NCBI GenBank assembly: GCA_025558095.1
Contig: JAIVFI010000036.1
Location: 372,001 to 436,000 of the forward strand
Direction: 5' to 3'
Origin: Hyaloraphidium curvatum SAG 235-1
Lineage: Eukaryota > Fungi > Monoblepharomycota
DNA length: 64,000 nt
Shown here: one piece after another, positions 26,817-35,042 of the stretch
How the letters are laid out: each line of letters opens with the position of its first letter
Position numbering within the stretch: position 1 is the first letter of the stretch
The notes under the pieces: model-generated
The model's input: the letters and a program-made list of their open reading frames with translations, nothing else
Told to the model about the DNA's origin: nothing
The model's database searches: none
Translations under genes and position numbers: made by a program

Positions 26817-27328
26817 TCAGCGAAGGAATGGATTGCCGTTGTCTCTCCTAGTTATCGATTCTGTCGAGGACGTCGACGAGCTCTGCCCTGAGGCTACGCG
26901 GGCAGGATCATCGGGAGCCGCATCCCGCTTTCGCGGAAGAGAAGCGAAGTTCGCAGCCACGTAGCCGATTGCTGCTTCTAGACTGTCCATAGCAGCCAGA
27001 ATGTCAGCGAGAGTGTCCTCGTCGAGTTCCGGAAACGCTTTGTAAAGCTGAGCTGTCAAAGGGCTGTTGGACTGGTCCCCGGTTGTATGGCTCCCCAATG
27101 ATTCCAGAGCGTCCTCGTTACTTGGCACAGATCCTTAGCAAAGCGCAGTCAAATGGAGAGCGGGTAGCGGGCTCACCAGGACCACCTGCCTCGCAGAAAC
27201 TGCACAGATTCGAGGAACGTTCTTTCGCGCAATTCTCCGCGGAGGAGCTCAAAAAGGTCCTTTTCCGACAAGGACGGGAACAATGCCAATATCATCTGCA
27301 CGTCCGCGTGGCCCCAAGTTGCTGACAT
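26817..27328 (-). CDS. Small protein with two CUE-like ubiquitin-binding domains
   Basis: Exon 1 MILALFPSLSEKDLFELL; exon 2 LYKAFPELDEDTLADILAAMDSLEAAIGYV (FP motif plus helices). Confidence 0.5.
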
Positions 27329-27479: not shown

Positions 27480-27554
27480 CTGCTCGGCTTGAAGCATCAT
27501 GAAGGACCGGCGGCAGAAGCCTTTCCCGATCCCCAATCATTGCAGCCAAAGCAG
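27480..27554 (-). promoter_or_regulatory. Eukaryotic SECIS element (type II) in the 3' UTR of the DsbA/FrnE gene
   Basis: mRNA sense: CUGCUUUGGCU-GCA-AUGAU-UGGGGAUCGG-GAAA-GGC-UUCU-GCC-G-CCGGUCCUUCA-UGAU-GCUUCA-AGCCGAGCAG. This gives helix I, a UGAU/UGAU quartet, a 10-bp helix II, unpaired AAA 12 nt after AUGA, and an apical mini-stem. Confidence 0.88.
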
Positions 27555-27604
27555 GATACGAAAGCACCCCTCACCCCCGACAATCAAACGATTCATTCAG
27601 GCGC

Positions 27605-28723
27605 TCAGAGCTTCTCCGATACCTCTTCGATGAGCTCCGCAAACAGCTCTGCCGTCCAACGTCAGCCAAAAGGTGCCACCTGACCGGCCATGGTCAACCA
27701 AGACTCACCGCTGTCTTGCGCACCTGAAACGGAGTACTTTTTGTTGAAGATGAAAAAGGGAACTCCGTTGACTGGCGACGGAGTGTCAGCTGATAGCTTC
27801 ATTGCTGCCATGTCATCTGCTCACCGCCGCGGCGCGACCAAGACATGGCCTCCCCCAGGATCCGCTATCAAAAGCCAAAGGCGAACGAGACAGGCACTAG
27901 CGTCAGATAAAGGGCGAGTGCCTTTGCGACGCGTGCTTACGTCGTAGTCCTGTCGTGGAAGGAGGGTGAGCGAAGGGCACAACCACTGGCAAGCATCCAC
28001 TCATACCTTGCCGCTCTTGAGGTAGGTCTCGATCTCCTCCTTGTCGACTCCCACCGAAGTAGCAATGCCCACGAGCACGTCGAGGTCGGAGATGTTCTTT
28101 CCGCAGCGAGTTAGGCACCCCGTTGGCAAAGCAACCACATCCAATACCTTGCACTCGTCAAAGTAGGCCGCAAAGAGCTTGTCCATCAGCTTGTCCGTGA
28201 CCTCTGGCCCGTACTTGGACTGAACAAAGTCGACGAGGCGGTGCGACTCCACGGTTTGCGCAATCACCCCGTCGTAACGCACGGTGAGTCCCTCCTTCTC
28301 GAACACTTGCTGCATGTGCGGGATCATCTGTTTAACGCGAGCCTCGCCGAACTTGGACTTGTAGCGCTCGAGCTTGTTGACACCCTGTGGTTTAATAGCC
28401 ATCAGGCACCGCTCGTCATAAGAGTCCATCGTAATCTCTAGCCCAACCTGCTTCGGCAGCGTCGGATCGAGCAGGAAGGGGTGCCAAGTGATCTTGAACT
28501 CCAGTTCGTCCTTGAACTTGGCCATCGCCCGCTCGAGTCGGCGCTTGCCGACCGTGCACCAAGGTCAGATAGTATCTGTACGAGGAGGAGTGAAGCCGAG
28601 AGAGTTCGAGGGAGTAAGCCGAGAGAGTTGGAGGGAGTGAAGCCGAGAAGCGACTAGCGAACTGCAAGGCTACCGACCAGACACAATGTCGATGGTGAGG
28701 ACCTTCTTCTTGCCGTCGGTCAT
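27605..28723 (-). CDS. DsbA/FrnE-family thioredoxin-fold oxidoreductase, predicted selenoprotein (U19-P-W-C22)
   Basis: Exon 1 (28723-28678) MTDGKKKVLTIDIVS splices to GAT ACT ATC TGA CCT TGG TGC ACG GTC GGC AAG CGC (D-T-I-U-P-W-C-T-V-G-K-R). Later motifs WHPFLLDP, VNGVPFFIFN, VSGAQ. Seven exons; SECIS downstream. Confidence 0.88.
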
Positions 28724-29015
28724 GGTTCCAAAGGTTCTGTACGCAGCAAGCGGCCGGAGACTGGGTGACAGGACAAGTGGGAGGCATGGCCAAAAGGCCG
28801 CGTGGATCGCGTTAGCGGCGCTCGCGGGCGTGCGGCTCTCGCCAATCGTATACCAACGTAGTGGAAGGAGCGACGAGGCGGGTCGGAGCGACGGTGGAGA
28901 GCGCTCCACGAAATCTCATAAGCGGAGCCACGCTGCTATTAGCTCTGCTATGGGCTGGCTGCCGCGGAGTAGCCCCAGGGTGATCACAAACTTGCCCGGA
29001 GCCCAGATATCGCCA

Positions 29016-33987: not shown

Positions 33988-35042
33988 ATGCTCGCGACGA
34001 CGACCACCGGCCGCTTCGCGGCGCGCCTCGCCGGCGGTGCGCCCGCCGCCGCCGCCGCGCGCCACGCGCCGCTCACTCCCGCATCCCGCAGGCGCCATCC
34101 GCCCGTCCGCCGCCATCTGGCGCTCCGGCATCCCGCTCGCCTGCGCAAGGTTGGTTGCTGAGACGGTTCGCACGGAGGACGGGAGCAGAGAGCAGACGTC
34201 GGCACGCCCACGCCACCCGCCCCCCGCCCCCCGAGGCACACGATGAAACGGAACTCGTTTCCACAATTCGCAGTTTCCACCGAAGGGGCACTCACCGGCG
34301 CCGCTGCGCAGCCCGGGCCGTGGCCCGCGGCGTGCGCGCGCGCCGGCGCCCCCGTGCTGGCCCAAAACTCTTCCTTGGATGTCTGATGCCTAAAGCCGGC
34401 CATCACGGCCGCGCATGCGTGACGGGGATACTCGAGGGTGCGGAGGACACGAAGCTGACGCCCGATCCCCGTTCCCGCCCCCCGGCAGCCCCTTCCACAC
34501 CTCGGCGGTGCGCAGGGCGGGCGACAAGACGCTGAAGCTCGACAACCCGTTCGAGAGGAGCGAGAAACTGGGCAGGCCGCTGAGCCCGCACACGTCCATC
34601 TACCAGCCGCAGCTGACGTGGGTCATGTCCATCATGAACCGCGTCGCGGGAGTGGGCGTCGGCATCGGTGCGTTTTCCTCGCTCTCGGGAGCAGTCGGGC
34701 TCTCTAACCCTTCGTCTGCCAGTCTTCTACGACTACTTCACCATGTACGCGCTGGCGCCTGGCTCGTTCGGCGGTGCCGCCGCCGTGTCGGCCGCCGCCA
34801 GCGCGCCCGCTCTGCTTTTTGCGGGCAAGGCGCTCGTTGCCACCGGCTTTTGGTACCACTTCTGGGCGGGCGTCCGGCACTGGGTTGGTATTCTTCGCGG
34901 GTGCCTCCTTACGGGACGCTGACAGCTCCCGTTGCAGGTCTGGGACCTGGGCTACTTCCTCGACCTGAAGGGCGTCTACAGCACAGGCTACTTTGCCGCC
35001 GTCGCGACGGCCGTCTGCGCCATCGCCACCCTCGCCCTGTAA
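33988..35042 (+). CDS. SDH3: Succinate dehydrogenase cytochrome b560 subunit
   Basis: Mitochondrial presequence-like MLATTTTGRFAARLAG; RPLSPHTSIYQPQLTWVMSIMNR; YHFWAGVRHW/VWDLG. Confidence 0.88.
34234..34391 (+). ncRNA. U14: U14 (SNORD14/snR128) box C/D snoRNA in an SDH3 intron
   Basis: Terminal stem AGGCA/TGCCT; C-like box CGATGA; domain A-like ATTCGCAGTTTCCAC; domain B-like CTTCCTTGGATGT followed directly by box D CTGA. Confidence 0.88.

Follow-up and report, generated by a model that had tools for sequence, protein, structure and literature searches.

Does the hairpin that follows a thiol-disulfide oxidoreductase-like gene in Hyaloraphidium curvatum SAG 235-1 direct the reading of an in-frame UGA as selenocysteine (Sec)? 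Recognition that fungi use Sec dates only from 2018-2019 and concerns about a dozen early-diverging genomes. The hairpin lies on the minus strand of a 64,000-nt stretch of contig JAIVFI010000036.1 (hereafter the window), and a sequence-only reading had described it as a canonical type II SECIS that supports recoding of a TGA codon. We consider it very probable that the hairpin functions as a eukaryotic form II SECIS element, predicted to lie in the 3′ UTR of the mRNA of a DsbA/FrnE-like thiol-disulfide oxidoreductase. The structure of the hairpin, the TGA-containing gene 5′ of it, two relatives and the Sec machinery of the genome all support the earlier description.

The structure of the gene is defined by a spliced contig of 815 nt from a public RNA assembly (depth 2945), which shows zero differences from the genome, leaves the TGA codon unchanged and has seven joints, including those of a 5′ UTR intron and a 9-nt microexon; all introns were placed from it (Table 1). 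The microexon (27941-27949, minus strand) reads GACTACGAC, encoding Asp-Tyr-Asp, and is backed both by the RNA contig, in which eight letters and one shared G lie between joints, and by the public protein P0271 (..SGKDYDRIL..). The 5′ UTR intron occupies 28761-28857 on the minus strand, and the 5′ end of the RNA contig, at 28927, continues into Illumina adapter sequence. Elsewhere in the window, a fungal-specific transcription factor domain is also encoded, together with an SPB4 helicase that is nearest to chytrid proteins among the named matches.

Alignment with full-length homologs identifies the in-frame TGA as a replacement of the first Cys in a CPWC motif. The second exon reads TI-TGA-PWCTVGKRRLE, and a search with the largest exon against 1.8 billion representatives returned homologs with IDIVSDTICPWCFIGKRRLEKA in the position of window IDIVSDTI-TGA-PWCTVGKRRLERA; many homologs, those of Gonapodya and Umbelopsis among them, read DTICPWC, against DTI-TGA-PWC in H. 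curvatum. Many of the homolog representatives begin at [MV]GKRRLE, just past the point of the TGA, and two carry W there, from which we infer that such starts and substitutions are gene-caller products on Sec-containing genes. For domain searches the exons were run one by one, with pieces split at the TGA, and for the spliced protein from Met33 on P0271 was taken as reference. The match to the Pfam family DSBA (PF01323) begins immediately past the TGA, at profile position 11; its matches to single exon pieces were weak and each under the cut-off, while PF01323 is recorded for P0271 itself. This public record of 186 aa bears the name 'thioredoxin-like protein [Hyaloraphidium curvatum]' and matches the present gene model without a difference from Met33 to the end, including the C-terminus ...EEVSEKL. 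The public annotation is therefore truncated, starting after the Sec codon and omitting the redox centre.

Read from the minus strand, the hairpin consists of a lower helix I, a small internal loop, a core of AUGA and UGAU, an upper helix II and a structured apex. The sequence-only reading had drawn helix I, the AUGA/UGA core, helix II with its bulge, an AAA 12 nt after the AUGA and a GGC-UUCU-GCC cap, and each of these was recovered at the positions it had given (Table 1); at the apex, one unpaired G precedes the AAA. An unconstrained minimum free energy fold returns helix I, helix II and the mini-stem at -37.3 kcal/mol (z -2.04; 7 of 200 shuffles fold as well), and a fold with the core forced open has the same three helices. 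Features of form II SECIS elements that are present include an AUGA opposite GA, flanking helix II, a helix II of 10 bp (about 9-12 expected) and the AAA at 12 nt (10-13 expected). The extra short helix after the adenines assigns the hairpin to form II and not form I.

Table 1. Coordinates of the hairpin, the selenoprotein gene and related features. Plain numbers are positions in the window; prefixed numbers refer to other loci or to the genome.
Feature	Coordinates	Strand	Details or basis
Whole type II SECIS hairpin, including extended helix I	27480..27554	minus	Minus-strand reading, Rfam SECIS_1 alignment, folds
Helix I	27554-27544 with 27489-27480	minus	One bulged U
5′ AUGA of non-Watson-Crick (kink-turn) core	27537..27540	minus	
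3′ UGAU of core	27496..27499	minus	Tandem G.A partner
Helix II, 5′ strand	27526..27535	minus	10 nt; cmscan alignment and covariation
Helix II, 3′ strand	27500..27510	minus	Bulged U27503; 10 bp in all
Unpaired AAA	27522..27524	minus	12 nt 3′ of AUGA
Apical mini-stem	27512..27521	minus	GGC 27521-27519, loop UUCU, GCC 27514-27512
Coding region, DsbA/FrnE-like selenoprotein	27605..28723	minus	8 coding exons, 218 codons, ATG 28723-28721
Introns in coding region	28576-28677, 28385-28447, 28097-28147, 27950-28006, 27865-27940, 27772-27824, 27649-27708	minus	Spliced RNA contig
In-frame TGA read as selenocysteine, DTI-U-PWC (predicted)	28565..28567	minus	Genome, RNA, homologs, two relatives
Stop codon TGA	27605..27607	minus	50 nt before hairpin, 64 nt before AUGA
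Intron adjoining Sec codon	L016:3623-3712; L017:3555-3629; window 28576-28677		
SPS hairpin	L013:601-661 = G000:C2:990566-990626	minus	16.3 bits with R1; 45.6 bits with R2 (trained on it)
Deiodinase-like gene, GSHS-TGA-PPF	L002:1029-1564 = G000:C3, SECIS 1123310-1123373	plus	SECIS 32.8 bits
Only SECIS_1 match above cut-off	L001:1501-1562 = G000:C30:527668-527729	minus	36.2 bits, 82% GC
SECIS-like hairpin	L005:1503-1559 = G000:C22:279584-279640	minus	
SECIS-like hairpins	L003 C3:598032-598093; L004 C41:19436-19496		

A search with Infernal and the Rfam SECIS models had been suggested as a check on the hairpin, and its outcome was divided. The SECIS_1 family (RF00031) aligns end to end (model 1-64) at 27549-27484, with an E-value of 4.9e-4 when a 281-nt stretch was scanned against all 4227 Rfam families, but the score of 29.3 bits falls below the gathering score of 35, which is an operational cut-off rather than a biological feature. 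In a genome-wide SECIS_1 run (31.9 Mb), scores of 28.7 and 32.8 bits had E-values of 0.019 and 0.0015, respectively, so that by interpolation 29.3 bits would amount to about E 0.01. Scans of the whole window did not list the hairpin in either mode: at gathering scores because 29.3 bits lie below the curated 35, and by E-value because the speed filters act more strictly on long input than on the short stretch in which it was reported. On the plus strand of the window, a match to SNORD14 (U14) was also found at 34235-34390 (52.2 bits, E 3.6e-8; gathering score of 64 not reached).

A crude scan by pattern plus energy was non-specific, passing 14 hairpins in the 64-kb window, three of them with lower energy than the hairpin studied here, and it did not pick up the hairpin of the selenophosphate synthetase (SPS) gene; the significance of the window hairpin therefore rests on the covariance model, on its position behind a TGA-containing gene and on its conservation in relatives. 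The score under the Rfam cut-off and the 14 loosely similar hairpins could be taken to mean that GC-rich DNA has produced a SECIS-like fold by chance, and that the TGA reflects an error in sequencing, a lesion in a pseudogene or simply an ordinary stop codon. This explanation, the least probable of those considered and scarcely credible, is already contradicted: two other species share the TGA, as does an independent RNA assembly, only about seven such hairpins exist in 31.9 Mb, two of the others stand behind genes with an in-frame TGA, and the orthologous hairpins covary, whereas no such hairpin follows a Cys-form gene.

The genome-wide count comes from models seeded with the window hairpin, a use that the sequence-only reading had foreseen and that proved productive. 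Model R1 was built from the window element and the three other Rfam matches in the genome (36.2, 32.8 and 28.7 bits), and the training set of the refined model R2 included the window and SPS elements. R1 added the SPS 3′ hairpin, which Rfam had overlooked, and two further elements, and R2 returned seven SECIS-like elements and one weak extra. All seven carry the AUGA, the AAA and the mini-stem, and the window hairpin, on which R2 was trained, scores 54.1 bits with it. Among the other six, one of the five scored by Rfam passes 35, and the SPS hairpin, located about 170-230 nt past the point where the SPS gene is estimated to end, has no SECIS_1 match at E ≤ 1. Besides that of the window, two of the seven hairpins sit behind genes shown to have an in-frame TGA, namely SPS and a deiodinase-like (DI-like) gene. 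In the latter, the sequence that follows the TGA has a match to Pfam T4_deiodinase (E 1e-16), and as its SECIS reaches only 32.8 bits, matches below the cut-off can be real in this genome. The gene before the L005 hairpin appears SelenoH-like by eye (..NS-TGA-GTYRGRA..KPRRGAFNFIV..), and Pfam gave no match for the genes upstream of the L001, L003, L004 and L005 hairpins.

Comparison with two relatives, L016 (Logan assembly SRR26194948) and L017 (Logan assembly SRR23967301), reveals conservation of both the TGA and the hairpin. The orthologs share about 70% protein identity with the H. curvatum gene and both keep the TGA in DTI-TGA-PWC, while across the three species the 16-19 codons that precede it encode conserved residues and differ at synonymous sites. 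Approximately 75-100 nt past the stop, the 3′ regions of L016 and L017 contain an AUGA, 12 nt, an AAA, a 3-bp mini-stem and a UGA. The AUGA, UGA and AAA are invariant across the three orthologous elements, and helix I around the L016 and L017 hairpins is of unrelated sequence. When the three elements were aligned, 87.7% of cells were paired in the whole structure, against 34-46% with the partners slid, and ten pairs were changed on both sides, with 0-1 of 500 shuffles reaching the observed values (three sequences only). Covariation is also seen within helix II, where 96.7% of cells are paired and six of the ten pairs are changed on both sides, again among three sequences only, and in L017 an A bulges at the position equivalent to U27503 of the window.

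Rfam SECIS_1 had no match in the L016 or L017 loci. However, a model of four H. curvatum elements, with L016 not included, found the L016 element at E 0.003, and the best match of R2 in the L017 locus, at only 11.8 bits and with filters off, falls exactly on the L017 element. The Cys form served as a control: KXS20988.1 of Gonapodya prolifera, an ortholog of 218 aa with 51% identity, has CPWC, and on the gene strand of the 700 nt past its stop nothing exceeded 3.2 bits. The intron near the Sec codon also differs in position among the three species, falling ahead of the D codon, inside the T codon or inside the P codon that follows the TGA (Table 1), which points to turnover or sliding of introns about a TGA that is itself conserved.

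The public RNA contig ends at approximately 27576, 27 nt before the Rfam start of the hairpin, and in the same assembly, the single one found, no contig covers 27409-27575. The hairpin is therefore a predicted rather than an observed part of the 3′ UTR of the mRNA. The uncovered interval would also fit an mRNA that ends before the hairpin, in which case only the protein from Met33 would be made, as in the 186-residue public record, and the hairpin would be irrelevant or vestigial. This is very unlikely: translation from Met33 would leave the DSBA fold with no part of its CxxC redox centre, three species keep both the TGA and the 18 codons that lead up to it while differing at synonymous sites, and compensatory changes conserve the hairpin. 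Moreover, neither poly(A) letters nor a loose poly(A) end were reported where the contig stops, though adapter was reported at its other end, and assembled contigs are unable to show RNA ends; position ~27576 is therefore no demonstrated mRNA end. Downstream of the SECIS, between two genes, a further RNA contig of low depth (4.8) spans 26995-27311 and contains a 56-nt skip with non-canonical splice ends (CC..TG).

The one genomic hairpin that passes the Rfam cut-off (L001) lies about 40 nt past the stop of a gene that reads by eye as PRXL2/SelenoU-like, with a Cys codon, TGC, where Sec would be expected (GRCCLCRED), and the hairpin may be a SECIS left over after a Sec-to-Cys change, or the gene may have been misread. 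Because this 36.2-bit element stands behind an apparent Cys gene, leftover elements may exist in this genome, and the window hairpin could likewise be a real but decaying SECIS in a gene that is moving from Sec to Cys or towards loss. Such decay is extremely unlikely for the window gene, which keeps TGA rather than TGC or TGT and reaches a high depth in RNA (2945), and whose hairpin has all core motifs intact and a helix II maintained by compensatory changes across species.

Most of the machinery for decoding UGA as Sec is encoded in the H. curvatum genome. A tRNA-Sec was found at 78.2 bits and called by ARAGORN as tRNA-SeC with anticodon TCA, SepSecS and an SPS gene with an in-frame TGA are present, and the eEFSec-specific domain IV was detected via its domain family. 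The best match of a selB model was rejected as eEFSec, being an IF-2 type GTPase, and a search of the genome for KTI12/PSTK gave one locus that was not assignable.

By analogy with other eukaryotic SECIS elements, the mRNA of the DsbA/FrnE-like gene would extend through the hairpin, where the tandem G.A core of AUGA and UGA would form a kink-turn bound by a SECIS-binding protein. This protein would recruit eEFSec carrying Sec-tRNA(Sec), allowing the UGA that lies about 660 nt before the core in the spliced mRNA to be read as Sec. The predicted product would be a 218-residue enzyme with the redox centre U-P-W-C instead of C-P-W-C, and the terminal UGA, only 64 nt before the core, would be read as a stop. 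Two further in-frame TGA codons occur 12 and 21 nt past the stop (27584-27607, minus strand), all within about 65 nt of the core, and might, speculatively, secure termination should the first be partly recoded.

The hairpin closely resembles known eukaryotic form II SECIS elements (RF00031), sharing the AUGA...GA tandem G.A core, helix I under an internal loop, a 10-bp helix II, the AAA 12 nt past the AUGA with a short helix after it and a location 3′ of a gene with an in-frame UGA; it differs in scoring 29.3 bits against the cut-off of 35, and no difference in architecture was seen. DsbA selenoproteins are known in bacteria (marine bacteria among them), green algae, Ciona and amphioxus, with Sec replacing the first Cys of CxxC (PMC2874816, PMC7539508). 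The Ciona DsbA genes use form II SECIS elements (PMC2874816). The H. curvatum gene shares with these proteins the DSBA fold and the predicted replacement of the first Cys by Sec, but its host is a fungus of the Monoblepharidomycetes. It also has the DSBA/FrnE subfamily layout of FrnE from Deinococcus radiodurans (PDB 5cp1, 5cnw), which, among solved structures, comes closest in sequence to the helical-insert exon, in a weak match (E 0.15) limited to that one exon; in contrast to the H. curvatum gene, FrnE is a bacterial Cys form without a SECIS.

Within fungi, Sec has been described in five early-diverging species and seven families (SPS, AhpC, MsrA, DI-like, TR, SelenoU and SelenoH), from which DsbA is absent (10.1101/314781). 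In the same work SECIS elements were found for 5 of 16 fungal selenoprotein genes, fitting the eukaryotic consensus and starting approximately 40-420 nt past the stop (10.1101/314781). The H. curvatum hairpin, 50 nt past the stop, is similar to these elements in its position, whereas, compared with 5 of 16, the SPS, DI-like and DsbA-like genes of H. curvatum all have a SECIS when a genome-trained model is used. A later survey counts 11 Sec-encoding early-diverging fungal genomes and has Hyaloraphidium in its taxon set (PMC9457484), and no report of the DsbA family as a selenoprotein in fungi was found in the literature searched.

On balance, it appears that this is the first DsbA-family selenoprotein to be recognised in Fungi, hidden by a truncated annotation, and that Sec (Hyaloraphidium and two relatives) and Cys (Gonapodya) forms occur within one class, with SECIS elements that are canonical form II and, in at least H. 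curvatum, where the hairpin has six sisters, merely under the Rfam cut-off. A DsbA/FrnE-like redox enzyme family would thereby be added to the fungal selenoproteome, and the hairpin helps to build a fungal SECIS model that detects the SPS hairpin beyond the reach of the standard Rfam model. The recoding mechanism, the type of RNA element and the selenoprotein family are already known, and relative to these known systems the fungal host, the mis-annotation and a usable set of SECIS elements are modest additions.
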